Shown: one piece after another, positions 11,516 through 56,280 of the stretch | Layout of the letters: every line of letters begins with the position of its first letter | How positions within the stretch are numbered: the first letter of the stretch is position 1 | Assembly: GCA_048013815.1 (NCBI GenBank) | Contig: CM106585.1 | Coordinates: 3,038,001-3,102,000 of the forward strand | DNA: 64,000 nucleotides | Reading direction: 5' to 3' | Source of the DNA: Setoptus koraiensis | Lineage: Eukaryota > Animalia > Arthropoda | Notes under the pieces: generated by a model | The model's input: only the letters and a program-made list of their open reading frames with translations | Told to the model about the DNA's origin: nothing | Database searches by the model: none | Translations under genes and position numbers: made by a program

Positions 11516-13978
11516 GGGTGTTCTTTCGAATAGCGCCACAGTTTGATTTGGATGAAACTTCACACACAGGGCCTGTAGGGCCCCATGACAATGCTCTGAG
11601 TAGTCCGGTGGTTCCGGTTTTAGCTTCATCTTTAAGATACAGTCTTGAAACTCAGTATGTTACCATATCAGACTACGACAACTCCGATGACATCATTTTC
11701 GAATCTATACAATTTCCGGTTCTCGAGATATTCAGAAAAATTGCATGTATGGGCGAATCTAGGCCGGTCTGGGTCTGTTCCTTACATCCAAAGCAGGGTG
11801 ACACGCATTCATGAACAGAACCCGTCTCAATCACGGGCCCCGCCCACTCGACTCCCAGTCCTCGGGAAGAATCTTTTTTAGTTAGGTGGCCGTCAGTCGT
11901 CCCGCCGGAGACCGCAGGCCGTAGGCGTGGACGACTGGGGGCCGAACCCCCCCTCCGGCCCGGACCCAAGCTGCATGGCAGACGGAAGGGCTATTATATA
12001 TTGAATATGGGTGAGCATGGGCACCCCGGGTTACCCTCGCGTAGCTCATTACATACTCGGATACCCTAAATACCTGGGTAGAACCTGGTATCGCACCTCG
12101 GGTTCATTTTCACACTTCCGGTATACAATTTCTGAGTTCAGAATACTCGACCGTACCTTGCTGTAGCAAAATTATCTCCAAAACAAGTTATACTGATTAT
12201 ACCAGTATAAGAGCGCTTAATTTTTCCAGTGAAAAATCTTAGAGGTTTGGACAGTTTATTAAGAAGTGATAAGTGCTAGCTGTCTCTAGAAAGTTTCAAG
12301 AATTTATCCTGGTGAGAACAGTTTCGAAAATTGCACATACTGTGGAAGAACATGTGCCACAAAATGGCCTATAGCGCCAATACTAGAAACAGAACAGTTT
12401 CGAAAATTGCACATAATGTATGGGCACATGTGATCAGAAATCACATGTATTGAATGAGCTAACATGATCCAGAATTGCCTATAGCGCCAATACTAGAAAC
12501 AGAAATTTGATAAAACTTGCACAGATCGTGTATGGCACAGTGCTTGCTGTCTCAAGAAAGTTTCAAGAATTTATCCTGGTGAGAACAGTTTCAAAAATCG
12601 CACATAATGTAATACTTGCACAAAATGTTGCTAGCAACATGCACAATACACACACGCAGTATCATCAAAACGGATAGGTGGGAACATGTTCAAATATCAC
12701 GATATTCACATGACATCCGTCATCCAAAATTTCTTTCTGTCTCGAAAACGACCGATTGATTTCTGATCATACTAGCACAAAATGTTGCGAGCAACATGCA
12801 CAATACACACACGCAGTATCATCAAAACGGATAGGTGGGAACATGTTCAAATATCACGATATTCACATGTGATCAGAAATCAGATGTATTGAATGAGCTA
12901 ACATGATCCAGAATTGCCTATAGCGCCAATACTAGAAACAGAAAATTGATAAGACTTGCACAGATCGTGTATGGCACAGTGCTAGCTGTCTCTAGAAAGT
13001 TTCAAGAATTTATCCTGGTGAGAACAGTTTCGAAAATCGCACATAATGTATGGGCACATGTGCCACAATATGGACTATAGCGCCAATACTAGAAACAGAA
13101 AATTGATTTGACTCGCACAGATCGTGTATAGCATCGATCCACCTCCTCACAATACATCAACCTCTGCATGAGCTCGGGACTTAAAATTCAATTCACCTCC
13201 CTGAAATGTGTGTTTGGGAGGTGGACGAACCTTCGAGTCTCAAACTTGTATGTAGGTTGTTGCATGCTCAGGAGGTGAACTTATTGTTTAAGCTCAAGCT
13301 AGTCCACCTCCCAAGCATGAGTCGCCCCACGCTATTTTGAGTAGCTAAACCTATCTCGTTATAGCTTCGGTCCACCTCCTAACTAGACATGAGCCCGAGA
13401 CTCAAGATTCAATCCACCTCCCTAGTAAATGTGTGTTTGGGAGGTGGACGAACTTTCGAATCTCAAGCTTGAGTGTACCTCCCACCTCCCACCTCCCAAG
13501 CACATTCCTGCCTACACACTCACTAAGCACTGATTATGCTAGTGCTAATGTATGCAAGCACACAGCGCGTGACTCTCAAGATCGAAAACTCGGTACGTGG
13601 ATATTCACTGGCATACAAAGTCGGAGTATTCACAAGCACACAGCGCGTGAATCACCATAGCACAATTGGTGAATATCCTATGAAATGCACGAATTAAGTA
13701 TCCACCATCATACCGTGCGTGGATATTCATGCGTGATTTATAGGATCCAACAACACTACATCATAAGCCCTTAATTAAAATTAAGCGCTAAAAAGCAGTG
13801 GGAACCGCTAGCGGTCGTCGGGTATCTCAAAACGCCCACTGTGCGGTACCTCGGTTATCTCGGGAACGAAGAATTTCCGCACTTCCGGAATACCCATCGC
13901 GATATTGGGGTACAATACCCTCCCCAAAAATACCCAAAATACCCTGATAAAAGTGTGGCGCTATTCGAAAGAACAACC
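11516..13978. mobile_element. GG-ended TIR non-autonomous element (hairpin-core family), interrupted by HINE 12183-13790
   Basis: Ends GGGTGTTCTTTCGAATAGCGCCAC / GTGGCGCTATTCGAAAGAACAACC; 8-bp TSD GAGACGAC at 11508-11515 and 13979-13986. Confidence 0.9.
12183..13790 (-). mobile_element. HINE, full length
   Basis: Reverse-complement 5' end (CTTAATTAAAATTAAGCGCTA) at 13770-13790; 3' end ACAAGTTATACTGATTATACCAGTATAAGAGCGCTTAATTT at 12183; removal restores a TIR-element arm matching 19630-19730. Confidence 0.75.
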
Positions 13979-14179
13979 GAGACGACTTCAGTCCGCCTCG
14001 CGAAAACAAACCGGGCCCTCGAAGCCTGTAAGCGGGGTGCGCTGGAGGGAGTGGCCGGAAAAGGAAGAGTTAGAGCATGCTATCCACCATGTCAACAACA
14101 AGGCGGAAAGCGAGGAGAGTGACACCGAAGTAGATGTCGTTGAAAGCGAGATTTCCGACGTACCAACAAACAGCAATAG

Positions 14180-14866
14180 ACGCTGAACACGATGGCACAA
14201 TTTTCAGCTCGGTGTGACTTCCGGTTCTCGAAATATCGGCATATTTATTGGTTCGGAAGACCGAACCAATGACGAATTTCAGCTTCGCTGCACTCGGGGA
14301 TGAACCTGCGATGGGTCTGAGAACTCGGCCTGCGGCCTCGTAATTTGGAGGCCGTCACATCTCCGTCGTCGCTCCCGCGACGACTGCGTGCGACGGGAAC
14401 CCTTCGGGTAGGGTTGATGAGCGCTTCGGATATCGGGCTACGCCCTCTACCCTCCGCTCACGTGACTGCAAACCATAGGAAATTCTTGGTTGAAGAAATG
14501 CGATGATAGAAACTGAATTCATCACAATGATGCGTATCATCATGAATCGGAGAGATATCGGGATGGATTGGCGGCAGTATATGGATATGGCGCGGATGCT
14601 TCGTTGCGAGCGGTACACCCGCGCGGTTTTCCCAGAATATCTCTAGAACCCGAAACCGCACACAGGTGTAACGAACTCTGTTTTACTCAGCACGTCCGCA
14701 TCCTGCTGTTCATCAAGTTTCATGGCTCTAGCTTGAAGTTTGTGTAAAACCGGAACCGGAAATTTCCGCACTTCCGGACTAGCGAATCCGTTGTTTGGGG
14801 GCCCTCCGAGGCCCATGTGTGAAGTTTGGTTGAAATCTGAGTGTGGCACTATTCGCTAGAACACCC
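14180..14866. mobile_element. Hairpin-core TIR element, left end missing
   Basis: Core GGTCTGAGAACTCGGCCTGCGGCC...CTCACGTGACTGCAA at ~14315-14470; right end CTATTCGCTAGAACACCC. Confidence 0.8.
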
Positions 14867-15021
14867 CTGAATTGGGCCAGAAGCAATCTATTCCGCTTGC
14901 ACGAATTATCAGTTACCATCCGAGACAGAATAGGACGCGGCAGTGGAAACTCTACCATCTACGTGACCTGGCTCACCAATACAGCCATAGAATCCTCATG
15001 AGGAAATAGAAAGAAGTGTGG

Positions 15022-15521
15022 NNNNNNNNNNNNNNNNNNNNNNNNNNNNNNNNNNNNNNNNNNNNNNNNNNNNNNNNNNNNNNNNNNNNNNNNNNNNNNN
15101 NNNNNNNNNNNNNNNNNNNNNNNNNNNNNNNNNNNNNNNNNNNNNNNNNNNNNNNNNNNNNNNNNNNNNNNNNNNNNNNNNNNNNNNNNNNNNNNNNNNN
15201 NNNNNNNNNNNNNNNNNNNNNNNNNNNNNNNNNNNNNNNNNNNNNNNNNNNNNNNNNNNNNNNNNNNNNNNNNNNNNNNNNNNNNNNNNNNNNNNNNNNN
15301 NNNNNNNNNNNNNNNNNNNNNNNNNNNNNNNNNNNNNNNNNNNNNNNNNNNNNNNNNNNNNNNNNNNNNNNNNNNNNNNNNNNNNNNNNNNNNNNNNNNN
15401 NNNNNNNNNNNNNNNNNNNNNNNNNNNNNNNNNNNNNNNNNNNNNNNNNNNNNNNNNNNNNNNNNNNNNNNNNNNNNNNNNNNNNNNNNNNNNNNNNNNN
15501 NNNNNNNNNNNNNNNNNNNNN
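15022..15521. other. Assembly gap (500 N)
   Basis: Run of N. Confidence 1.
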
Positions 15522-15704
15522 AGTATGATTGGCAACCAGTATCAAACCTCCACTCCTACTGTAGCTCATCTGAACAAGCGCGCACTTACTACTCACACAC
15601 TATCTATCTAAACCAAACTGCAGTTTTAACTGCAAAACAAACAATCGAAAAATACCCGGCAGCTGGTTCACAACCACTACCAACCCATCAATCACTCAAA
15701 TAAT

Positions 15705-16528
15705 GGTTGTTGTAGCGATTAGGTCCCCACTCAGATCTTGATGAAACTTCCGGTGTGGGTCCACCTTGACCCCAATAGAACGGAAAAAGTAGTCCGGATG
15801 CCAGGAAACTTCCGGTTCCGGTTTGACATAAAGTTGAGGCTAGAGATCTGAAACTCACCAGACCGACGTTTCAGAGAACGCTGAACACAATGGCATAATT
15901 TTCAGCTCTGTGCGACTTCCGGTTTTCAAGATATCGGCATATTTATAGGTTTGGAAGACCGGAAGTTGACGAATTTCAGCTTCGCTGCACTCGGGTATGA
16001 ACCTGCGATAGGTCTGAGAACTCGGCCTGCGGCCTCGTAATTTGGAGGCCGTCACATCTCCGTCGTCGCTAACGCGACGACTGCGTGCGACGGGAACCCT
16101 TCGGGTAGGGTTGATGAGCGCTTCGGGTATCGGGCTGCGCCCTCTACCCTCCGCTCACATGACTGCAATCCAGACACAGATGTTCGGAATGGCAGAAGAA
16201 TACGATAATGCATGGTTCTGCGCATAAGTGGCACAGAATGAGTCCGCTGAACGCAGCCGCACAGATCCGGCCACACCCTCGGATCAACTTAAACCTCTTT
16301 ATCTATCGAACCGGAAGTCATAAAAGATTAATTTTGATGTCATTATGCTCCGCTAGGTGTCTTCTATCTAATTCTGAAATTTGGGAGCTCTATCACGATA
16401 TTTTTGTATTTCCGGAACCGGAAGTTTCCTGGCATCCGGAATACTAAATTCATAGTATGGGGCCCCTACGGGGCCCTTGTGTGAAGTTTCATCGAAATCC
16501 GAGTGGGGACCTAATCGCTACAACACCC
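15705..16528. mobile_element. Hairpin-core TIR element, complete (824 bp)
   Basis: GGTTGTTGTAGCGATTAGGTCCCCACTC / GAGTGGGGACCTAATCGCTACAACACCC; 8-bp TSD CAAATAAT. Confidence 0.92.
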
Positions 16529-16558
16529 CAAATAATTATCATTTCAAGCTTCAAAAGA

Positions 16559-17446
16559 ATGAACCAGCTGTCGGGTACTTGGTCGCAAGTCCGGCTTGAC
16601 CGAGAGGTTCACCTCTCGGACAAACGAGCTTGCATCGAGTGGTGCCAACGAGTTGGCATGATACCTCAGACAAAACAATGCCGAAAGGATAGGGTAGCCT
16701 ACAAGCTAGAGCCGCGTCCTGATCTGATCATTGGGCACGGATGGCGCTGCCCTAAGTGCCGTCTAAGGAAGTCGATCGGGTCAGGCACGCCCTTCGAAGA
16801 AAGTCATATCGACATAGGGAGAGCCCTGATGATCGCGCTGAACTTCGCCAACAATGCAACATATGCCGACACTGCAGTGGCCTGCTCCTATGACGGTGAT
16901 CAACCAAGCCACACAACAATCACGCGCTGGTTCGATTACTTCAGGAGTCTAACATCTGATTGGGCAGTATCATACCAGAACCCCGATACTCGAATCGGTG
17001 GTCCAGGAAAGATAGTTCAGATCGATGAGGCATCGATAGGACGCCGTAAATATCACCGAGGGAGATCAGTGACAGGGCAATGGGTTCTGGGCATGATCGA
17101 TGAAGATGGAGAATTGAGATTGGAGATATGTCCAGGAAACAAGAGAACTCAAGAGGCTCTAATACCCCTGATTGAACAGCACGTGGAAAAAGGATCCGAA
17201 ATACACACAGACGAGTGGCGTGCCTACCAGGTGCTCGCAACGCGTGGGTACACTCATAGAACTGTGTGCCACAAGCGACAATTCGTGGCAGCGGACGGTA
17301 CCCATACCCAACGAATTGAATCAAGCTGGAGATCCTTGAGGAGGAAGTTCAACAAGGGAGGCATAAGAATTGAGGACATAAGCGAGCACATGATCGAGTA
17401 TCTGTGGCGTCGAAACTGTGCCCGTAGGCAAGCTGACCCATTCTAG
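16559..17446 (+). mobile_element. Merlin (IS1016/ISXO2-like) DDE transposase, probably with a premature stop
   Basis: WRCPKC zinc ribbon, VQIDEASIGRRKYHRGR, QWVLGMID, GSEIHTDEWRAY, HRTVCHKRQFV, GTHTQRIESSWRSLRR; DPF followed by TAG, frame stays open ~35 codons further. Confidence 0.9.
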
Positions 17447-18106: not shown

Positions 18107-18114
18107 AGAAAGAC

Positions 18115-19250
18115 GGGTGTTGTAGCGATTAGCGACCCAGTCAGATTTCGATGAAACTTCACACATGGGGCCCGTAGGGCCCCCTGACAACAGTTTGAGT
18201 GGTCCGGAAGTGCGGAAACTTCCGGTTCCGGTTTTACAAAAAAAGAGAGCTACGGCAATGAAACTCGGTTGACTGATTGATTAGAGCATGCTGAACATGC
18301 TAAACTCATTCTCCAGTTTCTGCGACTTCCGGTTCGGGAGATATCGAGGGAATTCTGGATATAGGAGCGTTTGGGTGTTGTAGCGAATAGTGCCCCAGTC
18401 AGATTTCGATGAAACTTCACACACGGGGCCCGTAGGGCCCAAAAACAATAACCTCGGTGGTCCGGAAGTGCGGAAACTTCCGGTTCCGGTTTTACAAAAA
18501 AAATGAGATACAGGCTTGAAACTCACTATACATGTGAATCAGAGCACGCAGAGTACGATAACGTCAATTTCAAATTTGTCTCACTTCCGGTTGACGAGAT
18601 ATCTGGATGAAACCGCTGCAGGGGCGTAGACGGGACGGAATACCCGCGCGCACGAACAAATACGTGCGCTATCAGGCCCATTCTGTTCAACACTTAAGGA
18701 TGCGCAGCTCCTTTTCTGTGCCGGATACATGTTCAGAGCCTTCCATGCGTCCCCATTTCGTTCTTTTTCTATCATTCGTGTATGGATTGCAGTCATGTGA
18801 GCGGAGGGTAGAGGGCGCAGCCCGATACCCGAAGCGCTCATCAACCCTACCCGAAGGGTTCCCGTCGCACGCAGTCGTCGCGGGAGCGACGACGGAGATG
18901 TGACGGCCTCCAGAATACGAGGCCGCAGGCCGAGTTCTCAGACACACCGCATGTGCATCCCCGAGCGCAGCGAAGCAATAATTTGGTCACTTCCGGTCTT
19001 CTAACCCTAGTAATATCTCTATATCTCGAAAACCGGAAGTCGCACAGAGCTGAAAATTATGTCATCGTGTTCAGCGTAGCTTGAAACGTCTCTGTAGTGA
19101 ATTTCAGAGCTCTAGATTCAACTTTTTGTAAAACCGGAACCGGAAGTTTCCGCACTTCCGGACCACTTTTCCCGATGGTTTTGGGTCAAGATGAACCCGT
19201 ACCGGAAGTTTCATCAAAATCGGGGCGGGGCACTATTCGCTACAACAACC
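18115..19250. mobile_element. Hairpin-core TIR element with a duplicated left arm (second arm start at 18373)
   Basis: GGGTGTTGTAGCG... / ...TCGCTACAACAACC; 8-bp TSD AGAAAGAC. Confidence 0.9.
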
Positions 19251-19467: not shown

Positions 19468-20447
19468 GGTTATACTTGCAAAGTGGGCACCCATCAGATT
19501 GAGGTATTTTGGGTATTTTTGGGTAGGGTATAGTACCCTGATACCAGATTGGGTATTTATAAGATGTAGAAACTTACAGTTTCCGAGTTACCCGAGGTAA
19601 CGCACAGTGGGCGTTTCGAGAAACCCGACGACCTCTAGCGGTTCCCACTCCTTTTTTTGAAGATAATTTTGTTACAGCAAGGTACAGTCGAGTATTTTGA
19701 ACTCAGAAATCGTATACCGGAAGTGTTAAAATGAACCCAATGTGCGATACCAGGGTTTACCCGGGTATTTCGGGTATCCGAGTTAGTAATAGGCTGCGCG
19801 AGGGTAATAATCACAACCGCATGAGTGCGGCATGACCGTTGCCGTCACCCGTCACCAAGGTAGATACCACACTTGGGACCGCACCTGTGATGGGTCTGAG
19901 AACTCGGCCTGCGGCCTCGTAATCTGGAGGCCGTCACATCTCCGTCGTCGCTCCCGCGACGACTGCGTGCGACGGGAACCCTTCGGGTAGGGTTGATGAG
20001 CGCTTCGGGTATCGGGCTGCGCCCTCTACCCTCCGCTCACATGACTGCAAACCATAGACGAGAGTAAGAGACAAGAAGAAAAGTTGAAAGCCTCGGAACA
20101 TGATTCAAGCGCTTCGACGACTTGTGTGGCGACATGTCTGAGCCTCTTGGCGCACGTATTTTCTCGTGCGCGCGAATATTTCGTCCCGGGCGGAATACCC
20201 GCGCGGTTTTTCCTGAATATCTCTGGAACCGGAAGTCGCACAGGCATGAAATGGACTACATTGTACTGAGAATGACTGTAGTCTGCTGCATACCAAGTTT
20301 CATGTCTCTAGCTCGAAGTTGAAGCTAAAACCGGAAGGAGTAATTTCTACACTTCCGGTCTAGAAGAATCGTCATCAGGGGCCTCTAGAGTACCCACATG
20401 GTGAGTTTCGTGGTGATCTGATGGGTGCCCACTTCGCAAGAACACCC
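19468..20447. mobile_element. Hairpin-core TIR element, complete
   Basis: GGTTATACTTGCAAAGTGGGCACCCATCAG / CTGATGGGTGCCCACTTCGCAAGAACACCC; 8-bp TSD GAACGCTT. Confidence 0.9.
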
Positions 20448-21468: not shown

Positions 21469-21470
21469 GT

Positions 21471-21529: not shown

Positions 21530-22654
21530 ATGGCCGGGAGAAGTACGAGAAGTGGTTCATCTAATGCCAATCAGACTTTGTCAGCGAATGACATAACTCA
21601 AAACATCGCAGAGGCTCTCCAACAGATCCCCAACATGAAAATGATCTACCAGATGAAGAGGTTTGATGGTCGGGGCAACGACCACGACGAGGCCAGAAAT
21701 TTCTTCAGAGAATTCGAACTGTTAACCACTGGCCTCTCTGATTCGCTCAAAATTCTTGGCTTAAAAATAACGTTGCGCAATGAGGCACAAGTGTGGTATA
21801 AAGAGGAGATAGCTGAATCTGACGATTGGAAGACAATTGCTCAAAAATTCAAAGATAGGTTCTATGCTCCAAATCGAGAGCTCGACTTGATTCAAAGGCT
21901 TCATGACTTGAAATATAATGCAGATGGTAACCAAACACTCATGTCATATCTCGAATATTACATACGCACTTACAAAAAAGCCCGCAAATTGCCTATTCAA
22001 CCATCATCTCAACAACAAATCGACATCATTCAAAGCTTTTATACCACCTTGCCATCCTCGATAAAAGGCCAACTGAACCTTATGACCGCGGTCTATGAGG
22101 TCAAGACACTGGATGAACTGAAGAACTACATTAAGAGATATGAGAATGATGTGAAGTCTCACCTCAACATGACTCCGAAACCGGACCAAACAGCTATGAT
22201 AAAGCTCTTCGAAAACCTCAGCAAAGGTATTCAAAGTCAAATAAAAGAACAATTGGACTCTGTCGTGGCGGCTAAGGATGAGATCAAGAAAACCGTGGCA
22301 ACTTTCGTACCGAAATATCAGAACCACCACGAAAATGTGCAACCCCATCAATCTTATAAGCGCAAATATGCTCAAGAGTACAATAGAAATTACCAGAAGC
22401 CTCGCTATGATAATTACAACAGGAATCGTGGACAGTACACTGATAGAAACCAGAGATTCTCATATCAGAAACCAATGCTTCCCCAAACTAACCAGCAGCA
22501 TCCAGCAATTGAAGGCAAAAAGAACGACGACATCGGTAACAAATTTAAACAACAGTACGAGCAGAAATACGGGCCAGTCCCAGCTCCTTGCAAATTTTGT
22601 GATGGTCATCACTTGCACAAACACTGTCCGTTCAACCTGGGCGATTTAAAATAG
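21530..22654 (+). CDS. gag: Gag (374 aa) with C-terminal CCHC knuckle
   Basis: RFDGRG..EARNFFREFE, LRNEAQVWY, CKFCDGHHLHKHC (CX2CX3HX4C). Confidence 0.9.
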   Translation: MAGRSTRSGSSNANQTLSANDITQNIAEALQQIPNMKMIYQMKRFDGRGNDHDEARNFFREFELLTTGLSDSLKILGLKITLRNEAQVWYKEEIAESDDWKTIAQKFKDRFYAPNRELDLIQRLHDLKYNADGNQTLMSYLEYYIRTYKKARKLPIQPSSQQQIDIIQSFYTTLPSSIKGQLNLMTAVYEVKTLDELKNYIKRYENDVKSHLNMTPKPDQTAMIKLFENLSKGIQSQIKEQLDSVVAAKDEIKKTVATFVPKYQNHHENVQPHQSYKRKYAQEYNRNYQKPRYDNYNRNRGQYTDRNQRFSYQKPMLPQTNQQHPAIEGKKNDDIGNKFKQQYEQKYGPVPAPCKFCDGHHLHKHCPFNLGDLK

Positions 22655-22689
22655 AGAGGGTGATCGTTAATGAGATCGACCGACCACCC
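22645..22689 (+). promoter_or_regulatory. Predicted -1 ribosomal frameshift signal (slippery heptamer plus hairpin)
   Basis: T TTA AAA in the gag frame just before TAG; pol is in the -1 frame; GGGTGATCG (22658-22666) pairs with CGACCACCC (22681-22689) with one mismatch. Confidence 0.7.
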
Positions 22690-25600
22690 GAGAGAGTTGT
22701 TAAAGGTCTCACAAAGACTTCTGATTTGATAATTATAAGGCTCACTGTTGATAAGCTCGAAGTATCTGCTATAATCGATACCGGAGCCACTGCATCCTTC
22801 TTACCCCAGTTTGGAACTGTTATGCAGCTATTAAGACCCGATACCAGTCCAGTTAATGTACGAGCTCAAAACGCTGACAATGCATGGACGTTTATAACAA
22901 TGTGTGCTTGTGTACCTCTAGGCCTATGTGAATTCCCAGAGGAACAAAGAAGAGCTAAATTCTTGATTTCCCCCGGCGGAACCGATATCTTAGATCACGA
23001 CTTACTTTTGGGGTTACCAGAAATCTTATCCCTTGGACTGAACATCATCAATGACGGAGAAAGTCTTTCAGTTGTGAAGAATAAGCGCATAATTAAAGAG
23101 ATATCTTCATCACAACTTGAGCATCAAGTGCACCAAAAATGTCTTGTAAGATCCGTTAATAACATAACAGATCGACTGACCAGCGAGAGAGGACAACTCG
23201 AAACCAAGTTACGTTCATTTAACTGTGTATTCGCCGAAGAAATTAGATCACGAATAAGATGTCAACCTATGGAAATTCCATTAATCTCCAGAAATCACCC
23301 ACAAGCTAGGTTGCGAAGACATAATCCTGAAGAGATAGCTGCAATCAAGGTCATTGTAGACAGATTGATCGATTCAGATATAGTGGAAGTTTCGCGATCG
23401 AATTTCGCCTCCAACGTACGATTGGTGCCAAAAAAGAATGGTCAACACCGACTGGTGATAAACTATATACCATTAAACCGTATCACTAAGAGAGATTGTC
23501 ACCCGCTCCCCAGGACAGAGGATCTGTTTCTATGCCTTAGAGGAGCTAAATTCTTCACAACCTTAGACGGGACAGAAGGGTTCTTTCAGATCCCGCTCGC
23601 TCTCCAGGACCGTCACAAAACAGCTTTCGTGACCCCTCATGGATTGTACCAATATAAGTGTTGTCCTTTCGGCTTGACAAACTCACCGGCCGAATATCAG
23701 CGAACAATGAATGACATCTTCTCCGAAGGTCTCTACAGATGGTGTGTCGTATATGTCGACGACATATTAGTTTTTGGTCGGACTATAGAAGAACACAACC
23801 AGCGGCTGCTTTGGGTGATGGAAAGATGCGTCAAATCCAACCTTAAACTCAAGAGGTCCAAGTGTAGACTCCTGCGAACAGAGGTAGAATTCTTAGGACA
23901 CATGATTGCCGAGAATAAAATAGGCCCTGTCCGTGGCAAGACCGACCCGATATACTCAATTCTACCGGCAGCTAAGAGAGATGTGCAGATCATATTAGGT
24001 ACTCTGAACTACTATGCCAGGTTCATTCCAAATTATGCTTCAAAGACGCAGTTTTTGCGCGAATTAATCAGAGATGACGTTACGTTTGAATGGACACGAG
24101 ACCAAAGTGCCGCTTTAAACGATCTGCGATCAACACTCGAACAGGCGGAATTTCAATACATCCCATCGTCAGACGAGCCTAAGACAGTCGAAATTTTCAT
24201 TCAGGAGAGGACTATCGAAGTCGTCTGCTTCGGTCATAAGGACCTCCTCATATCGAGAGCAGGACATGTGCTGACAACAGCCGAATCCAACTATGGTACA
24301 ATAGAGAAACACCTGCTTGGCATCATACTGGCTCATAAGAAGTTTGGTGTCTACTTGCCAAGAGAACACACAACTTATGTTACGTCTTTCAAAGGCTTAG
24401 ATCACCTACTAGATGCTAAGGAATTACCAGCAAGGATTGAAAGACTTATATCACGACTTCCGCCGAACATAATACCGATATTCAAGGTGAGAGAATCTGA
24501 CTCCATATCTGAACTTAGTGCAGATAGTTCAAGCCCATTAGAGGAACTATTTTTCACCGACGGGGCTTGCGTAAAAAATGGGACTAAAGAATGTCGCGCA
24601 TCATGGGCCGTGTGTGCCACATTCAATAGGAAATTGACGCATTCAGGCATAGTTAAAGACGAAAAACCCTCCAATCAAGTGGCTGAGTTACGTGCCGTTA
24701 TTGAAGCCTTAAGAATAGCCAAACAAAACAACTTGAAATCAGTTGTAATCAAATCTGACAGCAGGTATGTGACCAATGGTTTCAATAAATGGCTATCCAA
24801 TTGGCTTAAGAACGGATGGAGGGACCATAAGAATAAAGAAGTATTCCATCGGCAGATGTGGGAAGAACTCATCCAAATGAAGCAAGATCTTCAGGTCAAG
24901 TGTCTACATATCAAGGGTCACTCTGGAGACGCAGGTAATTGCGAGGCTGACACCTTGGCGAAGGTTACGCTGGAGAGAGATCTCATGGATAAGTGTACTA
25001 CTCATTCGATTGCTTCCAAAAGAATATTCACAGTCGCACGCGAAGATTGGGACGATGAAATGAACACGATAGAGCAAAATCTATCAAACGACCCAATGTC
25101 AGCGTATATCATAGTTGAAGATAAGCTCTATTTCGTGGATAAACATGCCTTGGACGAATACAAACTGCGATTGTTCATACCGAAAAGCAAGAGAACTGAA
25201 CTTATAAAGCTAGCACACTACCATCCCATATATGGAGGTCACCATGGTGTGAAAAAGACATCCTACAAACTGAGAGATTTCTACTGGCCTAAAATGAGGT
25301 TGAGTATCGAAGAGGCCATCAGATCGTGTAGATCTTGTCAACTATTTAAGCCACGTAATGGGAAACCACCCGGCCTGATGCAGCTGCTTCCAGTCACCTC
25401 TATTTTCAAGACTACACATGTTGACATTGTTGGACATGTCACCACTTCTACTGACGGTAACAGGTGGATCATCACAGCCATTGACTCATATTCTAGGTAC
25501 GGCTACGCGAGAGCAAGGCCTGAAGTAACGTCAAAAGATGTTATAAAATTCCTAGAAGAGGATGTTTTCTCAAAACACGGACTGCCAGACACGATTATAT

Positions 25601-38715: not shown

Positions 38716-39633
38716 GGGGCTTGTTCGGAAAGACGACACACCCCAATTTTGGTATTTCGTGTATTTTTGGGTGGGGTATGATGCCCTGAGACCGGAAAAG
38801 GTATTCCGGAAGTGCGGAAATTCTTCGTTCCCGAGATACCCGAGGTACCGCATTGTGGGTATTTCAGGGTATTTGTGGGCACATTTGGGGTACGGGCAGC
38901 CGTATCCTCCCGCATTCACATACGGTGTGGTGCTGATGGTCGATTATCGAGGCTAGATTCGACCTAACGGTCCCAGGAAGAGCATGAAAGTAGTTTAACT
39001 TAATGGGCGTGACCAATGGATGCAGCGCGAAGCACAGCTCCGGCCGCTGGATCATCGACGGGATTCTAAGCACGTACTTCGAGGCTGCGCCCCTCAGGAT
39101 ACGCCACGATGTGCGGGTGGGCCTTTGGCCCACCCGCATAGGCCGGCCTACCGTCCACGCCGTCGGCCGAAGGCGTGGACGGTAGGCCGGCCTGCCTCGT
39201 GACGGCCCTACGGGCCGTCCCGCATCCCGAGAAAGGATCGTTTCCCGTAGGCTGGAGGTCGAGTGGGCGGGGCCCGCGATCGGACTGGGTTTTATTCGAG
39301 CCCGCTTCCAAGTTGCCAGCTTGAACAAACGATTAGGCCAGAGAGACTACCCGATTCGCGTTTAATCTCGGACCGGAAGTGCTAGATTAAAAAAACAGTG
39401 AATTTCTCGAGATCAGGTTCTCAAATATGATTCGATCTAATGGAATCACGTACATCGTAGTGGAAACTGGGCGATTATATCGAAATATATGGTAAAAAGC
39501 ATCTGTGAGACAAAAAAAAATGGATTTTTTGATATCTCCGGAAGTGAAAATTTCCGCACTTCCGGACTGTCATATTTGAACCTGTGTTGAGTTTGATCGA
39601 AATCAGAGTGTGTCGTCTTTCCGAACAACACCC
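38716..39633. mobile_element. Hairpin-core TIR element with the type-2 core
   Basis: GGGGCTTGTTCGGAAAGACGACACAC / GTGTGTCGTCTTTCCGAACAACACCC; 8-bp TSD CAAATTTC. Confidence 0.88.
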
Positions 39634-49147: not shown

Positions 49148-49986
49148 GGTTGTTGTAGCGATTAGGTCCCAGCGCCGATCATAATGAAACTTCCGATACA
49201 GGTTTATCTTGACCCGAAACCATTGGAAAAAGTGTTCCGGAAGTGCGGAAACTTCCGGTTCCGGTTCTACCTCAAGTTGCTTCTAGAGAGTTGAAACTCA
49301 GCAGACTAACGATTTAGATGACGATTAACACGATGACATAAATTTCAGCTCTTCACCAGTTCCGGTTCGCTGGTTGTAGCGATATCTCTGGAATTGAGAG
49401 ACCAGAAGTTGCCGAATTCAGGCTTCGCTACACTCAATGATGAGCTTTATAGCATCTGAAATCACATCTCCGTCGTCGCACCCGCGACGACTGCGTGCGA
49501 CGGGAACCTTTCGGGTAGGGTTGATGAGCGCTTCGGGTATCAGGCTGCGCCCTCTACCCTCCGCTCACATGACTGCAATCCTAACCCAGCTGCAGGCCGG
49601 AAGAGTGAGCGAACCACCCGACAGAGAATGAGAAAGAAGGAATTAAATGACTGAAATAGACGTGAATAAAGAGTGCAGCGAGCACGAGGCACAGAATGGG
49701 TCCGCTGACCGCAACCGCACAGGCCCGGCCTCACCCCAAAATTTGGTTCATCCTCTGTATCTTATGAACCGGATATTAAAGCAGATTAATTTTGATCTCA
49801 TCATGCTCCGCTAGTTGTCATCTGCCTAATTCTGAATTTTCAGAGCTCTATCTCAACATTTTTGCATCTTCGGAACCGGAAGTTTCCGCACTTCCGGACT
49901 ACTCAATCCATAATATGGAGCCCCTGTGGGGCCTGTGTGTCAAGTTTCATGATGATCGGCGCTGGGACCTAATCGCAACAACACCC
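49148..49986. mobile_element. Hairpin-core TIR element, complete
   Basis: GGTTGTTGTAGCGATTAGGTCCCAGCGCCGATCAT / ATGATCGGCGCTGGGACCTAATCGCAACAACACCC; 8-bp TSD GATCTTTC. Confidence 0.92.
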
Positions 49987-50355
49987 GATCTTTCCAATGT
50001 GGCTGGAGCTAGCACCCCATCGGCCATCGAGGGACCAACTGCTATTGAGGAACTCCATGAGGAAGTCATTCCCCCTCAAATTGATACCGGCTATGAGCCC
50101 TTGAGTGAGCCAATTATTGGTGAAAGCACTGAGGTACCGGATAGTGATGAAGTCTCCATTATCTCGCATCAGGCCACGGACATTGCCCTCAGTCAAGATG
50201 ATTCGGCCCCAACAACTCGAAGTAAGGCAAGCCCCAAAACCAAGGGTAAAAGGAAAACAGGCGATACATCCATCACTCCTCCAACACAAGGTGCCAAAAA
50301 AGCGAGAAAGTTTCCTTCTTAAGATTCTACGCCACTTACTATTGAGGAGCCGACT

Positions 50356-51142
50356 GGGTTATTCTATCTAATAGCGCCACACTTTTTTCGGGGTATTTTG
50401 GATATTTTCGGGTAAGGTATTGTACTCTGATACCGGAATGAGTATTCCGGAAGTGCGGAAATTCCCAGTTCCTGAGATAACCGAGGTACCGCACGGTAGG
50501 CGTTGATTGATACCCGACGACCGCTAGCGGTTTCTGGGGTATATTTTAGGGTATTGTCACTATTTCTGGGCAGTCAAACTCATTCTCAACCTATCTGAGT
50601 GAGAAGATATCGATAAACAGGACTAAAGATTGGCCAGCACCAAATTTTCCGCAGATTTGAGCTTCGCTGCACTCGAACATAAGCCTGAGTGTTCTGAGAA
50701 CTCGGCCTACGGCCTCGTATTCTGGAGGCCGTCACATCTCCGTCGTCGCTTCCGCGACGACTCCGTGCGACGGGAACCCTTTGGGTAGGGTTGATGAGCG
50801 CTTCGGGTATCGGGCTACGCCCTCTACCCTCCGCTCACATGACTGCAATCCATACACGAAAGTAGGTTGTGTAACATACTGTCTACTGCCGAATTCTATT
50901 ACGATCGCTCATTATCTCAAAAATCGGAAGTCCAACAGATATCAAAATGACTTCGAGGTGGTTATCACAGTCATATCAGGCTCTATGTTAAGTCTCTAAG
51001 CTGTATCTGCAAGTTTATGTAAAACCGGAACCGGAAGTTTCTGCACGTCCGGACCATTATAAGTGTTCTCAGGTGGCCCTTCGGGCCCCAAGTGTGAAGT
51101 TTCATCCAATTCGGAGTGTGACGCTATTCCATAGAATACCCC
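50356..51142. mobile_element. Hairpin-core TIR element (no TSD recognised)
   Basis: GGGTATTTT-type arm, core at ~50692-50850, right end CTATTCCATAGAATACCCC. Confidence 0.8.
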
Positions 51143-51439
51143 GCTCCAGCCCGGACATGCCCAAAATCACTGTTAAATCTGCAACCGGAACGGTGGAAAG
51201 GCGAGCAATTCGGCCAATTCCAATTAAAAATGAGAAAATGTGGGACATCCATTAAAAATGTTGACATTGCAATGATGTGTGATGAACAAACAGATAATGA
51301 ATCAAATGATGACGCCATTAATTCATCTGTTGCGAACGAAACTACAGCAACTACCTCACCAAATAAGCTAGGCAATACTATTCTAAGTTCGACATGGTCG
51401 ATGTAGAAGGGCGGGGTGGGTGGTTTTCTGGGGTGTTTG

Positions 51440-54050
51440 ACATATATAGAACAACAAAACTACAAAGAGGCCATGCAACATGCTAACAAGAGCGTCTGGC
51501 GACAAACCATCAATAATGAGCTGGAATCACTAATCTCTAATAATACATGGAAAAGTGTACCAAAAACAGATGAGATAGAAACACTAGGAACCAGATAGAT
51601 CTTCAAAAGAAAAGTGAACAAAGACGGAACAGTAGACAAAGTTAAAGCTCAGCTGGTAGCCAAGGGCTATGAGCAGCGAGAAGGCCTGGATTTCTTTGAA
51701 ACATGTGCGGCTGTTGTCCGTTATGACTCTATAAGGATGTTTTTCGCAATTATAGCTCAGCTTGAGTTGTCTATGGTTCAATTTGATGTGGAAACCGCTT
51801 TTTTAAATGGCCTTCTGGACGAGGACATATATATTGTGGCGCCAGAGGGGGTACAGTGTGAAGTAGGACATGTGCTCAATTCGAATAAAGCCTTATATGG
51901 GCTCAAGCAAGCCCCTCTATGTTGGAGAAACAGATTTGACGATATCGTGAGTAAACTCAACGTGTACCCGATTGTGTCTGATCCATGTTGACGATGGACT
52001 AGTGGCATGTTCAGATCGAAATATTGCTAAGCTATTCATCGAAGAAATTGGCAAATCAATTGAAATCAAAGTTCTCAACTCGAACAATTTTGTCAGTTAT
52101 GAATTGATAATCAACAGCAAAATTGTCATTGCTCATCAAAGATTATACATAGAGTCGATGTGCAACAAATATGGCGGTTATTCTATCGAATAGTGACCAC
52201 GCCCAATTTGGGTATTTTGGGTTTTGTCGGAGAGAGTGTTGTGCCCTGAGACCGGAAAAGGTATTCCGGAAGTGCGGAAATTCTTCGTTCCCGAGATACC
52301 CGAGGTACAGCATTCTGGGTATTTGAGGGTAAATTGACGGTACGATTGGCCGTACCCACCCGCCCTGATATCCGGTGAGTTACTGATGGTCGATTATCGA
52401 GGCTAGAATCTACACAACAGCCCCAGGAGCAGAATGAACGTAGTTCAACCTGAAGGGCGTGACCAACGGAAGTGGTACGGAGGGCAACTGCGGGGGCGGA
52501 TCATCGACGGGATTCTGAGCACGCACTTCGGGGCTGCGCCCCTCAGAAAGTGCCACGATGTGCGAGTGGGCCTTTGGCCCACCCGCATAGGCTGGCCTAC
52601 CGTCCACGCCGTCGGCCTTCGGCCGACAGCGGGACGATTGACGGCCTGCCTCGTGACGGCCCTACGGGCCGTCCCACACCCCGGGAAAGGAGTGTTTCCC
52701 GTGGGCTGGTTGTCGGGAGGGCAGGGCCCGCGATCGGGCAGGGTTCTGTTCGGCCTTGCGTTCAAGTTGCAAGCCTGAATGAACAATTATGCCAAATAGA
52801 TCACTCTATTCGCGTCGATTCTCGAACCGGAAGTGCTGGATATAGAAAACAGTGAATTTCTTGAGATCGGATTGTCAAATATGATTCCATTTGATGCCAT
52901 CGCGTGGATTGCGACAAGAGCTGTGCTATGATGCCAAAATTTACAATATAAGACTTTTGTGAGAACAATAAAACGGATTTTTCGATATCTCCGGAAGTAA
53001 AAATTTACGCACTTTCGGACTTACATGGAGATCGGGCTCGGTCACTTTTCGATAGAACACCCAATATGGCATGCAGAACCATTTTCCCTGTCACACGCCG
53101 CTAGTAGATCTAGATAAACTAATGACTATATCAGATCTAGACACACTCAGTGAGGCACCATACAGACAACTAATAGGGTGCCTCAACTACGTTGCGTGTG
53201 TGTCTAGACCTGACATCACGTATGCAGTGAATTTTCCGGCTCGTTTCAACAATCGGCACTATGAGAGGCACTGGCAGGCAACAATTCGAGACTACTGTCT
53301 GACGTATGAAAAGTTAGAATGTCTAAAACTGAATGTGTATACGGACTCTGACTGGGCGGGGAATGTGCACGACAGGAAGTCAATAAGCGGTCTTATCGTT
53401 CATCTGTCCGGAGGCCCAGTAGTATATAGGGCAGAGCAACAAGAGATAGTGGCTTTAAGCAGCTGTGAGGCAGAGTATATAGCCGCTAGTGATGCAGTCA
53501 AAGAACTCATTTGGTGTTCATCGATATTAAAAGAGCTTGGACTAGATCAGTATCGTCCAAAAGTTTTAATAGATAATCAATCTACAATCAAATTAATATC
53601 AAGCGAACAGTTCAGTAAAAGAAGTAAACATATAGAAGTCAAATATCATCATCTAAAAGATTCGTTCAGAAAGGGAATATTTGAAGTTGAGTATATAAAG
53701 AGTGAAAAACAAAAAGCGGACATAATGACGAAGGCGTTAGGCAAGAAGAAGAATATGGCTCTTATCGATCTTATTGGCTTATATTCTCTTCTGTTCCTGG
53801 CCCCGACAGCCAATTCATCGGCCGAAGTTTCTGAGATGGCCGTAGAAGACTTAGTATTGTGGCACAAGACGCCAATAGAACACTTAAAAGGGCAAACGGA
53901 TGTGAAATTAGACCTTCAGTTCAGGAGCCTGTGCCCCATACTATTTGGCAATTGCACCGACATATATATGATGAACAAAATCATGACGACTACGTGTGAA
54001 GACGCTTTTCAGAAGCTGGTAGTCGACGAAATGGATGACGTCTGTACGTC
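51440..54050 (+). mobile_element. Ty1/copia pol remnant (RT-RNase H), split by a TIR element and reading through into an unknown C-terminal extension
   Basis: KAQLVAKGYEQREGLDF.ET, QFDVETAFLNG, ALYGLKQAP, HVDDG, PYRQLIGCL, YTDSDWAG, SSCEAEY, KHIEVKYH, ADIMTKAL; removal of 52176-53070 restores NKYG-MQNH. Confidence 0.9.
52176..53062. mobile_element. Hairpin-core TIR element with the type-2 core
   Basis: GGTTATTCTATCGAATAGTGACC / GGTCACTTTTCGATAGAACACCC; 8-bp TSD AATATGGC. Confidence 0.9.
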
Positions 54051-54054
54051 AACA

Positions 54055-54983
54055 GCGACCACGCCCAATTTGGGTATTTTGGGTATTTTTGGGTAGGGTA
54101 TTGTACCCTGATACCCGAACAGGTATTCCGGAAGTGCGGAAATTCTTCGTTACCGAGATACCCGAGGTACCGCATACTGGGTATTTTAGGGTATTTGAAG
54201 GCATATTGAAGGTATAGTCGGCCGTACCCACCCGCTCGAACATCCGGTCAGATACTGAGGTCCTAACAACGGAGGTAGATCATTCCTAGAAGCCACAGGA
54301 AACGAATAAAAGGGGTCAAACTGAAGAGGCGTGGCCAATGCGCGCGGAGTGAAACTGCGCCCGCAGATAGTGAGACCACCCACCGAGTCCTAGCACTACT
54401 GAGGATGATGAAAGTTGAATAAAGGCTGAGCCCTAACTTTTTCGACGCTTTCGACCTCGCGGACCGCGCAGACCCAGAACTCCGCTCGTACTGACCCCTA
54501 TTTCGATCTTTACCGACTCGGCCTTCGGCCTCGCGAGCTTGCCTCGCTTCGGGTTGAGGGCTTCGCCCTCAACCCTCGCTCGAACCGACAACCCCGGCCT
54601 TCGGCCGAGTAATTGTCACACACCCGAACACCATAAACAATGCGAATGCGTGATAAGCTGAGTGCGGCTCGTGAGACGTCAGATGTGACTCGAATTGCGT
54701 GACCGGAAGTTGGTCCAACAGTGAATGGTGGATATCTTCTGAGTGGATGATTATAGAGGTTGGATTGCAACTGCATGTTGAAGGTGACAACTGAACCTAT
54801 TCGAAAATACCAAAACTTTTAGTCTGAGGCACTTCTGAGGCCCGGAAAATGCTTTTTCCCGTATCTCCGGAAGTAGAAATTTCCGCACTTCCGGACCTTC
54901 AAAAATGTTCTTTGGGGCCGCTTCGCGGCCCTTGTGTGGAGTTTGAAGGAAATCGGGCTTGGTCGTTGTTCGCTACTACACCC
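54055..54983. mobile_element. Hairpin-core TIR element with the type-3 core, left terminus truncated
   Basis: GGGTATTTT arm, TTC-loop hairpin cluster 54505-54612, right end CGCTACTACACCC. Confidence 0.75.
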
Positions 54984-55027
54984 GAAAAATTAAGCGCTCT
55001 TATACTGGTATAATCAGTATAACTTGT
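54984..55027 (+). mobile_element. HINE 3' terminus
   Basis: AAAAATTAAGCGCTCTTATACTGGTATAATCAGTATAACTTGT. Confidence 0.7.
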
Positions 55028-55097
55028 TTTCTCACTTTCCAAATGTTCGTTTGTTTGTTCGATTTATGAACCGAAAGCACACGCTTTATTCTATTTT

Positions 55098-55372
55098 TAG
55101 CGCTTAATTTCAATTGAGCGCTAATGATGTAGTGATGTTGGATTCTAAATGGAGGAGGCAATCCACACACAAGCCTACAATTTTGAGTCACGCCCCCTCT
55201 TTAGCACACAGAAAGCTACAGCCTGAATGAGACTTAAGTCGCTACGCTCTCTAGCACACAGTAGGCTACACACTAGTTTGAGACTTAAGTCGCTCCACCT
55301 CCCCAGCACACAGTAAGCTACAGCTTGATTGAGTCACTCCACCTCCCCAGCACACAGTAAGCTACAGCTTGA
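55098..55372 (+). mobile_element. HINE 5' portion with ~45-bp tandem repeats
   Basis: TAGCGCTTAATTTCAATTGAG start; ccacctccccagcacacagtaagctacagctt repeats as at 33240-33540. Confidence 0.65.
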
Positions 55373-56280
55373 GGGTGTTGTAGCGATTAGGTCCCCACTC
55401 AGAATTCGATGAAACTTCACACATGGGCCCCGTAGGGGCCCTGTATTACGAGTTGAGTGGTCCGGAAGTGCGGAAACTTCCGGTTCCGGAAATACAAAAA
55501 TATCAAGATAGAGCTTTGAAATTTCAGAATCTAGTAGATGACACCTAGCGGAGAATGATGAAATCAAAATCGATCTCCCATCACTTCCGGTTTAAGAGAT
55601 ATCAAGGTTTATTTGATTAAGAGGTGTGGCCGGGTCTGTGCGGATGCGGTCAGCGGACCCATTCTGTGCATAGAGTGAGCAACACCATGTATTGGGTCAT
55701 ATATCAGTCATCACATTGATATAATAAAAATAAAATAATTATCCATATCCTCTTGTCCCATTTGTTTTCATTTTTTGTCGGTTTTTTTCGTCTTTCTCCA
55801 TACATCTGTGCATGGATTGCAGTCATGTGAGCGGAGGGTAGAGGGCGCAGCCCGATACCCGAAGCGCTCATCAACTCTACCCGAAGGGTTCCCGTCGCAC
55901 GCAGTCGTCGCGGGAGCGACGACGGAGATGTGACGGCCTCCAGAATACGAGGCCGCAGGCCGAGTTCTCAGACACACCGCATGTGCATCCCCGAGCGCAG
56001 CGAAGCAATAATTTGGTCACTTCCGGTCTTCTAACCCTAGTAATATCTCTATATCTCGAAAACCGGAAGTCGCACAGAGCTGAAAATTATGTCATCGTGT
56101 TCAGCGTAGCTTGAAACGTCTCTATGGTGAATCTTGGAGCTCTAGCTTCAACTTTTTGGAAAACCGGAACCGGAAGTTTCCGCACTTCCGGACCACTTTT
56201 TCCATTCTATTGGGACCAAGGGGGACCCGCACCGGAATTTTCATCAAGATCTGAGTGGGGACCTAATCGCTACAACAACC
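55373..56280. mobile_element. Hairpin-core TIR element (both termini present, TSD not matched)
   Basis: GGGTGTTGTAGCGATTAGGTCCCCACTCAGA / TCTGAGTGGGGACCTAATCGCTACAACAACC; reversed core ~55815-55972. Confidence 0.85.

Follow-up and report, generated by a model that had tools for sequence, protein, structure and literature searches.

Twelve transposable elements, located between positions 11516 and 56280 of the window (the whole 64-kb stretch of DNA that was analysed), are on sequence criteria non-autonomous deletion derivatives of Merlin, an IS1595-like DDE transposon, in an acariform-mite-like genome. Each of them carries an internal GC-hairpin cassette. Comparison of the copies shows that this cassette and one downstream-arm hairpin are under purifying selection on the element lineages, which preserves the pairing and keeps C-G(N)NA-G loops on one strand. 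The full reading that we propose, in which these Merlin derivatives are mobilised in trans and the selected one-strand cassette works as a folded DNA cis-module, has in our judgement an even chance of being correct.

The elements were counted by BLAST, nhmmer and motif mapping, which located the twelve elements together with solo arms (Table 1); an earlier note on this DNA had estimated about twelve terminal inverted repeat (TIR) copies with GG(T/G)TGTT-like ends. All copies end in GG(G/T)TGTT or GGTTATT, and the arms are ~230 bp long and ~73% complementary within one copy. Exact 8-bp target-site duplications (TSDs) stand on both flanks of seven copies (I, D, K+A, H, L, F and M), the same seven that had been listed before, and an empty site matching the insertion of element D is present in a related contig. 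A near-identical 'alpha' core was found in eight of the twelve elements (A, B, C, D, E, F, G and H), while the other four hold different GC-hairpin cassettes, 'beta' in L, M and I and 'gamma' in J. Ends in tandem are seen, and type-2 sides have been swapped among copies. No copy contains an N-gap: gap 1 falls in the interval from E to D, and gap 2 begins 131 bp past C. None of the conclusions depends on continuity across these gaps.

Table 1. Positions of the elements and related features in the window
Feature	Coordinates	Strand	TSD	Remarks
Element I	11516-13978	+	GAGACGAC	2463 bp; beta-like cassette ~11830-11960; unrelated 1.6-kb insert
Element E	14180-14866	-		Low-coordinate side truncated; alpha core 14316-14469
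Element D	15705-16528	-	CAAATAAT	Alpha core 16013-16166; inserted 31 bp 5' of the transposase ATG
Merlin/IS1595-type DDE transposase ORF	16559-17446	+		295 aa
Element K+A	18115-19250	+	AGAAAGAC	Extra left arm K 18115-18345, then full copy A 18373-19250; single TSD round the whole
Arm hairpin GGGGCCC-GTA-GGGCCCC	18167-18183	+		
Alpha core of copy A	18789-18942	+		Four hairpins
Element H	19470-20447	-	GAACGCTT	Alpha core 19895-20048; opposite side is a 'type 2' subterminal region, GGGTATTT-rich
Element C	35309-36450	+	none	C proper 35511-36450; alpha core 35986-36139
Second terminus-bearing arm preceding C	35309-35510			
Element L	38716-39633	-	CAAATTTC	Beta cassette ~39079-39219
Element F	49148-49986	-	GATCTTTC	Alpha core 49455-49576
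Element G	50357-51141	-	none	Alpha core 50693-50846; type-2 side
Element M	52176-53062	-	AATATGGC	Beta cassette ~52530-52673; element-strand loops GCA, AAA, GAA, GTA
Element J	54040-54983	-		Left boundary approximate; gamma cassette ~54515-54612, three C-GAA-G hairpins
Element B	55373-56280	+	none	Alpha core 55819-55972; abuts type-2 arm fragment 56281-56414

The assignment to Merlin begins with the transposase gene that follows element D, which is the only transposase coding sequence found by tblastn in the window (16559-17443). Its product matches the Pfam domain DDE_Tnp_IS1595 (PF12762; E=1.9e-18) and has 237 homologues, insect Merlin-like proteins among them, and the DDE triad (D156, D218 and E254) aligns with that of its relatives. 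The gene lacks its last ~10 codons as well as the 3' flank, and no arms belonging to it can be recognised. Gap 1 interrupts its leader, since the homology of contig L018 to this region begins at 15522, the first base past the gap. Merlin elements are defined by an 8- or 9-bp TSD, 5'-GG termini and TIRs of 24-462 bp (PMC8101967). The transposase domain, the 8-bp TSDs and the GG-starting TIRs found here all agree with membership of Merlin/IS1595. The elements themselves contain no transposase ORF, have ends in common with the autonomous element and keep internal remnants, as MITEs and other deletion derivatives do; in J, for example, a transposase 3'-end remnant and its AATAAA are kept upstream of the cassette.

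The autonomous partner that had been sought for this family is Merlin, with autonomous relatives in public contigs that have matching termini, an 8-bp TSD and arm sequence. The autonomous relative L014 is identical to copies I and C over its first 11 nt and is flanked by the 8-bp TSD CGCATTTA, the downstream arm of L010 aligns with the left arm of the MITEs, and in L014, L010 and L018 the same termini, arm or cassette adjoin a DDE_Tnp_IS1595-type gene. In L018 the transposase is followed by its stop, an AATAAA, ~75 nt and then the start of a gamma cassette that is 87% identical to that of J. From this layout the cassette is seen to belong to the autonomous element, where it lies just 3' of the transposase poly(A) signal and before the downstream arm. 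The G(N)A loops of the L018 cassette are on the strand antisense to the transposase.

That the ~160-bp core is better conserved than its surroundings had been noticed earlier, and the alignments bear this out. When the eight alpha copies are compared pairwise, the core averages 93.8% identity, against 66% for the left arm, 75% for the right and 45% for the variable region. The divergence of the arms is old, because transversions are as many as transitions and CpG has not been lost. Within the alpha core, only 4 of 84 stem nucleotides vary against 17 of 76 unpaired ones (p=0.0017, ~4-fold), and the five free loop 'N' positions have collected five changes, ~1.0 per site, which is near the 1.11 per site of the arms. 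Most stem changes still leave a G.T wobble pair when read on the element strand (5 of 6 by RNAalifold, or 3 of 4 in a narrower stem set). A cassette is also kept in all 12 deletion derivatives, in at least three types. Recent amplification alone, which was an objection raised in advance, hardly explains this pattern: the core is constrained and not merely young, and the constraint tracks base pairing.

The hairpins of the alpha core are present as they had been described. Hairpin 1 of copy A (18798-18840) is long, with tandem G.A internal loops and a GCA triloop, and the others are a 6-bp hairpin, an 8+8-bp hairpin with a GGGA loop, and GGCCTC/GAGGCC or GGCC-GCA-GGCC. Loops of the types GTA, GCA, GAA, GGA, GGGA, GTTA and GGAA were seen, each closed by C-G. 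In the G-N-A triloops N can be any of the four bases, and the G-NN-A loops include GTTA, which is not a GNRA loop; the consensus stems are nearly wobble-free and almost all Watson-Crick. The elements thus follow the DNA mini-hairpin rule C-G(N)NA-G with a free N on one strand.

Covariation, which the earlier note had proposed to look for, was found in part, solely in the arm hairpin and in the comparison of alpha with gamma. In the arm hairpin, present in 10 arms at ~55-80 nt from the 'left' terminus, two pairs covary, with five cells changed on both sides and 93% paired, which is equalled by 1 of 500 shuffles; a C-G pair is swapped for G-C with the pairing retained. Between alpha and gamma, the tandem G.A loop of hairpin 1 is replaced by Watson-Crick pairs and one A-T by T-A. 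No double compensatory change was detected by RNAalifold within the alpha core among the alpha copies. The three cassette types retain the hairpin format in spite of their different sequences, and the pairing is maintained via compensatory changes in gamma and the arm hairpin, and probably in beta. In DNA, templated correction of quasi-palindromes can imitate covariation without selection.

The strand bias that had been suspected for the triloops holds within the window. Among triloop hairpins inside the elements whose stems have 4 bp or more, G-N-A is on the arm-defined strand in 40 cases and T-N-C in 3, against 18 and 27 outside them, although these counts come from 64 kb and 12 copies, many of them non-independent, and correspond to ~9-10 independent hairpin positions against one exception. 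The motif GCGNAGC occurs 44 times in the window (15.8 expected), with a strand ratio of 30:1 within elements and 6:7 elsewhere. The local exception near 39168 is real and results from a fold-back rearrangement of copy L relative to M, in which the beta cassette has a 22-bp perfect fold-back palindrome at 39139-39194. Another mutational scar associated with the hairpins is found in element F, where a 32-bp deletion of the core removes exactly hairpin 4. In the more distant autonomous Merlin relatives L014 and L015/16 comparable hairpins have their G..A loops on the transposase sense strand, so that the strand rule may not be universal. The contrast between stem and loop rates, the compensatory changes and the strand polarity together indicate that the cassette is a selected, strand-polar structured cis-module.

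The elements would be moved in trans by a Merlin transposase like the one whose ORF is at 16559-17446, and the cassette would most likely work as folded DNA, either as hairpins or as a cruciform, when the strand antisense to the transposase is exposed by replication, repair synthesis or supercoiling. The folded cassette may then be a structural or recognition module in cis that raises the chance that the element is mobilised or copied, and candidate steps that it might serve are transpososome assembly, replication coupling or priming. A stronger version, in which the Merlin lineage passes through or depends on a one-strand ssDNA stage (replication-coupled, copy-out-type, or with hairpin-dependent priming or repair) and the cassette is its cis signal, we consider doubtful, somewhat more so than an RNA role or the absence of any function. 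The idea of an origin or priming site in the earlier note is speculation, and the sequence itself gives no sign of such a site or of an ssDNA stage. RNA of the same strand would fold likewise, with at least equal significance, and the fold alone fits ssDNA, cruciform DNA or RNA.

One other explanation, an unlikely one, is a role of the cassette at the RNA level. The element strand would be transcribed, antisense to the transposase and perhaps from a start in the downstream arm, and the transcript would fold and act as a regulatory or antisense RNA (IS10 RNA-OUT is the comparison case), as a protein-binding RNA, or as a 3'-end or termination signal. This would agree with the z scores of RNA folding, which are -3.9 on the element strand and -2.6 on the opposite one, with the wobble-only stem changes, which favour the same strand, and with the tandem G.A loops, the GGGA and GGAA loops and the purine-rich unpaired positions, which are typical of structured RNAs; the cassette also adjoins the transposase 3' end, and the arms are rich in ETS-like CCGGAAGT motifs that could drive transcription. 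Yet searches of Rfam 15 gave no match to the cassettes, whether the gathering thresholds were applied or a local search was run at E<=10. Of the earlier caveat that the core is a structured RNA, the link to a known RNA family has thus fallen away while the significant element-strand fold stands. The consensus stems, being nearly all Watson-Crick, also speak against RNA, no evident promoter-terminator pair flanks the core, and an inhibitor RNA is not expected to persist in every non-autonomous lineage. The C-GNA-G triloops and the GTTA loop are stable loops of the DNA type and not of the RNA type (PMC13037366). An origin of the core in the host, by capture of a sequence or as a non-coding RNA gene carried along, is prompted by its conservation in excess of the surroundings and by nothing more specific, and it is very improbable: all nine alpha/gamma cassette matches in the window are inside elements, so this earlier caveat is not borne out, in another sample a Merlin transposase 3' end runs directly into the gamma cassette, and no match was found in Rfam, in a tRNA search or in protein databases.

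The absence of any function has about the same low probability as an RNA role. GC-rich palindromes with ultra-stable G(N)A mini-hairpins at their centre would be made and kept perfect by fold-back or template switching in repair synthesis, and the alpha core would have spread recently by recombination or gene conversion. The copies are indeed mosaic (A and B share the core and right half at 89-100% and the left arm at only 72%), which means that segments were exchanged between lineages and that part of the core uniformity could therefore be due to recombination or gene conversion. Tandem ends, exchanged type-2 sides and the absence of double changes within alpha point the same way, and the fold-back of L and the hairpin-exact deletion of F indicate that the cassette sequences do fold during DNA synthesis. 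However, it is hard to obtain from recency alone free loop positions that change like the arms beside 84 stem positions with only four changes, and the loop G and A stay constant while N takes each of the four bases. The retention of cassettes of at least three types in every derivative, and of one in an autonomous relative from another sample, also argues for selection. Another hypothesis is that the transposase or a host factor binds the palindromes as duplex DNA, at a site that is enhancer-like or of promoter/terminator type, and that the hairpin never forms. The alpha stem sequences are invariant beyond what pairing alone demands, and other DDE transposons such as the P element, piggyBac and Ac are known to require internal sequences in cis. 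We nevertheless find this improbable, as the three cassette types differ in sequence yet keep the hairpin format, the arm hairpin has swapped C-G for G-C with pairing kept, and loop strand polarity would be meaningless for a symmetric duplex site.

The proposed folded DNA module can be compared with several known systems. The family resembles the Merlin superfamily, eukaryotic relatives of bacterial IS1016/IS1595, and its non-autonomous derivatives in its DDE_Tnp_IS1595 domain, 8-bp TSD, 5'-GG termini and long TIRs, and differs from it in an internal strand-polar cassette that is better conserved than the TIR arms; a survey of Merlin does not mention hairpins or palindromes (PMC8101967). The DNA mini-hairpins d(GCGNAGC)/d(GCGNNAGC) of phage G4-type complementary-strand origins, the ssiA priming site and phage N4 early promoters obey an identical rule, in which a C-G pair closes a sheared G.A pair with one or more free middle bases, and they too are clustered and functional on a single strand (PMC13037366), but they act on true ssDNA of phages or plasmids or with a dedicated polymerase, whereas here they belong to a DDE transposon in an animal chromosome. 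Similarly, Streptomyces linear-replicon telomeres and the 3' hairpins of autonomous parvoviruses have packed GC palindromes, GCA loops and sheared G.A on one strand (PMC4513846). Those structures are terminal, with a 3' overhang and end-patching or rolling-hairpin replication, while the cassette lies inside the element, 300-400 bp away from both ends.

The subterminal hairpins of IS200/IS605 and Helitron are likewise encoded by transposons and read on one DNA strand. These elements use HUH nucleases and have no TIRs and no TSD. An HUH ssDNA transposon is excluded here by the TIRs, the 8-bp TSDs and the presence of only DDE-type domains; no HUH ORF was found in the window. Classical eukaryotic DDE transposons are known to require in cis their ends and nearby duplex binding sites. 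The internal domains of the P element and piggyBac, the subterminal regions of Ac and the internal enhancer of Mu are, like the cassette, non-terminal DNA, and deletion derivatives need them for efficient movement as they may need the cassette here; to our knowledge proteins bind these sequences as duplexes and there is no sign in them of selection for hairpins, and we know of no biochemical study of the Merlin transposition mechanism. What differs in the present family is an internal module, kept far more strictly than the 230-bp arms, which follows the rule of the most stable known DNA mini-hairpins and has one polarity over the full length of the element. Should mobility require this module, it would point to a structural or single-strand step in Merlin transposition, for which loop and stem mutants offer a simple handle, and the ssDNA-stage reading, if true, would be a requirement unknown for any eukaryotic DDE transposon. 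If it is a mutational by-product only, the family would still illustrate clearly how, in nature, hairpins drive the evolution of sequences within transposons.

Self-comparison of the window resolved twelve elements, together with solo arms, between positions 11516 and 56280. In a full copy such as A, two arms of ~230 bp each enclose first a variable stretch and then a core of ~160 bp, the right arm being an inverted repeat of the left (~73%). The elements end in GG(G/T)TGTT, and the GAAACTTCACAC motif marks one arm and can be used to orient the copies. All seven target site duplications (TSDs) described in the earlier note are exact. At the insertion point of copy D, a related contig from another sample (L018) is continuous and has a single CAAATCAT, and it therefore represents the empty site for D. 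Both assembly gaps lie outside all copies and the findings on the elements do not depend on continuity across either of them; the first gap interrupts the leader of the transposase gene, since homology to L018 starts at the first base past it.

The window has a single Merlin transposase gene, an ORF with 237 homologues, insect Merlin-like proteins among them. Its D-D-E triad is intact and its last ~10 residues are missing, the homology of its relatives stopping after ~17410. It sits between the outward-facing ends of D and of K, an extra left arm before A; D lies 31 bp 5' of its ATG, and no arms belonging to it were found in the window. We take this ORF to be what remains of an autonomous element after loss of its 3' end. 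The small elements are tied to this clade by three public contigs with related transposases. L014, with 44% identity at the protein level, represents an entire autonomous Merlin that has an 8-bp TSD and shares its first 11 nt with copies I and C; in L010 (65%) the terminal arm aligns with the left arm of the window elements; and L018, which is 66% identical to the window transposase at the DNA level, shares a cassette, i.e., a central GC-rich block of hairpins. The autonomous partner, whose class the earlier note had left open, is thus of Merlin type. Judged by the characters of a published survey (PMC8101967), namely GG termini, 8-bp TSDs, arm length and a linked transposase clade, the elements are members of Merlin. 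A single-strand transposon of the HUH type is ruled out for the family because the elements have terminal inverted repeats and TSDs. About 230-260 nt 5' of the transposase ATG, two related contigs carry GGTTCGA(A/C)TCC, a tRNA T-arm or B-box-like motif (L001:255-270 and L010:145-165); ARAGORN, run on L001, called no tRNA in that contig.

Coordinates of features in the window
Feature	Positions	Remarks
Patatin-like iPLA2-gamma gene	3626-4933	intact
PIF/Harbinger DDE_Tnp_4 ORF	8158-9345	DDE fragment
Dispersed repeats in element I	12190-13780	~1.6 kb
Merlin-type transposase ORF	16559-17446	Pfam DDE_Tnp_IS1595, E=1.9e-18
Extra left arm K	18115-18372	before A
Copy A	18373-19250	full copy
Gypsy-type LTR retrotransposon gag/pol	21530-26973	RT, RNase H, integrase
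Second terminus-bearing arm at C	35309-35510	before C
Opposite-strand GCGAAGC in copy L	39027	outside the 22-bp palindrome
GGGTATTT-rich subterminal regions	19503-19807, 50380-50560, 38740-38900, 52200-52340, 54060-54200, 56281-56414, 13790-13950	
CCGGAAGT examples	18204-18225, 19140-19161	element arms

The hairpin loops of these elements have a clear strand polarity. With the elements oriented from their arms alone, the triloop hairpins within elements whose stems reach 4 bp or more read G-N-A on the strand set by arm orientation (the A-strand) in 40 cases and T-N-C in 3, compared with 18 and 27 outside. The heptamer GCGNAGC occurs 44 times in the window against 15.8 expected; within elements 30 occurrences are on the A-strand and 1 on the other, and outside they number 6 and 7. 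When orthologous positions are counted once the bias remains, at ~9-10 versus 1, in a small sample drawn from a single 64-kb window. These counts bear out the one-strand triloops of the earlier note and show a loop rule with one-strand polarity within this family. The same note allowed a single local exception. There are in fact two, both in copy L: one lies inside a perfect palindrome of 22 bp, a fold-back rearrangement that takes the place of a 7-bp hairpin of copy M; the other is a GCGAAGC elsewhere in the copy.

The alpha core, a cassette of four hairpins present in copies A to H, has a mean identity of 93.8% among its eight copies, whereas the left arms reach 66% and the right arms 75%, and the stretch preceding the core cannot be aligned between subfamilies. 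The better conservation of the core than of its surroundings is thereby upheld. One explanation, which would have undone the functional reading, is that recent amplification alone produced this pattern. Yet the arm differences include equal numbers of transitions and transversions with no depletion of CpG, so the arm divergence is ancient and not due to deamination. In addition, the middle positions left free in the G-N-A and G-NN-A loops, five in all, show five changes (~1 per site), close to the 1.11 per site of the arms, compared with 0.05 in the stems; these rates argue for old age and constraint over recent amplification. Variable sites fall on 4 of 84 stem positions and 17 of 76 unpaired ones (Fisher p=0.0017), and RNAalifold, run independently, returned the same four hairpins. 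Of six changes in the RNAalifold stems, one disrupts pairing and the other five produce G.T wobbles when read on the element strand; in a narrower stem set, three of four changes lead to wobble. Together, the distribution of changes among the copies shows purifying selection on the cassette that tracks pairing. Recombination, seen in mosaic copies, contributes to the conservation pattern.

The hairpins are also kept where the sequences differ. The central position is taken by other cassettes in four elements: beta (L, M and I-like) and gamma (J), both of them strings of GC hairpins (DNA-fold z = -6.4 and -3.5, respectively). Gamma is collinear with alpha; its hairpin 1 has Watson-Crick pairs in place of the internal loop of tandem G.A, and an A-T pair has been turned into T-A. 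A further hairpin lies 55-80 nt inward of the left terminus in ten arms, with the loops GTA (five), GCA, GAA (two), GGA and ACA (one). Its stems, paired at 93%, switch from C-G to G-C at two positions, a covariation matched in 1 of 500 shuffles. Covariation, which the earlier note had proposed to look for, is thus found in the arm hairpin and between alpha and gamma, but no double compensatory change exists inside alpha. Correction of quasi-palindromes can mimic covariation.

The origin of the cassette can be read from L018, where the transposase is followed by its stop codon, AATAAA and, ~75 nt further on, the first gamma hairpin, with 87% identity to J; J still aligns to the last codons of the transposase and AATAAA. 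The cassette therefore belongs to the autonomous Merlin, in which it comes just past the likely 3' end of the mRNA, and the small elements are internal deletions that lost the gene and kept the cassette. A position upstream of the transposase, suggested by L001 and by nearness to one arm, was overturned by L018, where the cassette is downstream of the poly(A) signal; likewise, hairpins "upstream" of a truncated transposase in L011/L012 fall in the N-terminal coding region and were dropped. Read along the sense strand of the transposase, the loops are T-N-C, and the G(N)A strand is antisense. One hairpin that follows the stop codon in L001 (71% identity) has this polarity too. L014 and L015/16 are more distant; there, GC hairpins also occupy the interval from the gene to the downstream arm, with the loops GAA, GTGA and GTTA on the sense strand. 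The hairpin position recurs across the transposase clade and the strand relative to the gene varies. The L014 cassette shares with those of the window only matches of 9-15 nt (E ~0.05), for which we claim no homology. The sequence directly 3' of the L001 stop codon (1460-1505) folds into a hairpin similar to the histone 3' stem-loop of metazoans; it scores 22.8 bits against Rfam RF00032, short of the gathering score of 34, and may simply be a local form of the cassette.

Insertions with intact TSDs are young, and differences between copies would therefore mostly be differences between their sources; selection would then act on source lineages, so that the cassette would help the element to be mobilised or copied. 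It could do so as folded DNA or as RNA of the same strand. The RNA folds equally well (z=-3.9), and with DNA parameters the two strands are indistinguishable (-40.5 vs -39.9 kcal/mol). However, C-GNA-G and C-GNNA-G loops with any N are a hallmark of extraordinarily stable DNA mini-hairpins (PMC13037366), one copy has a GTTA loop, which is outside the GNRA class, and the consensus stems are Watson-Crick almost throughout. Furthermore, a deletion in F removes exactly hairpin 4, and this and the fold-back in L are scars typical of hairpins formed in DNA synthesis. Between these two readings we lean slightly towards folded DNA. Phage G4-type origins and N4 promoters (PMC13037366), as well as Streptomyces telomeres and parvovirus ends (PMC4513846), resemble the cassette in motif and strandedness, but the cassette is internal to a chromosomal DDE transposon. 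That it serves as an origin or priming site, the idea of the earlier note, is one possibility among several and an improbable one.

A known RNA family for the cassette is excluded by the absence of an Rfam match, as none fits the cassettes in searches of the whole window (gathering and E<=1) or in local ones (E<=10), and ARAGORN found no tRNA. The invariant hairpin-3 pattern had 7 loci in metagenome DNA, all chance matches to a short palindrome; the arm motifs had no match in viral contigs and, among bacterial genomes, a single chance match in a GC-rich MAG; and spurious core-spanning ORFs used as protein queries gave no matches or low-complexity ones. The metagenome, protein-query and bacterial-genome scans recovered no additional genomic copies beyond the window. 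The Merlin survey (PMC8101967) does not mention hairpins or palindromes, and a literature search that covered mostly openly accessible papers found no report of such a cassette.

Other features of the elements can be mentioned. Both K+A and C have a second terminus-bearing arm of the same direction beside the proper left end; a single TSD flanks the whole of K+A and C has none. This arrangement suggests aberrant or nested transposition events. Element I contains unrelated dispersed repeats, in which TRF found no tandem array. In H, G, L, M, J and I one arm is replaced by a second subterminal type rich in GGGTATTT repeats. Going by how J and L018 are oriented, this type probably represents the arm upstream of the transposase in another autonomous subfamily. 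CCGGAAGT occurs 61 times in the window against 1.3 expected, nearly always within element arms and often as close inverted pairs. It reads like an ETS-class transcription-factor consensus, and such repeats could be transposase-binding subterminal sites, or host-factor or promoter sites. The gene content of the window looks like that of an animal genome; the patatin gene has its best named relatives among mites, first Aceria tosichella (an eriophyoid, 52%) and then Halotydeus, Leptotrombidium and Tetranychus.
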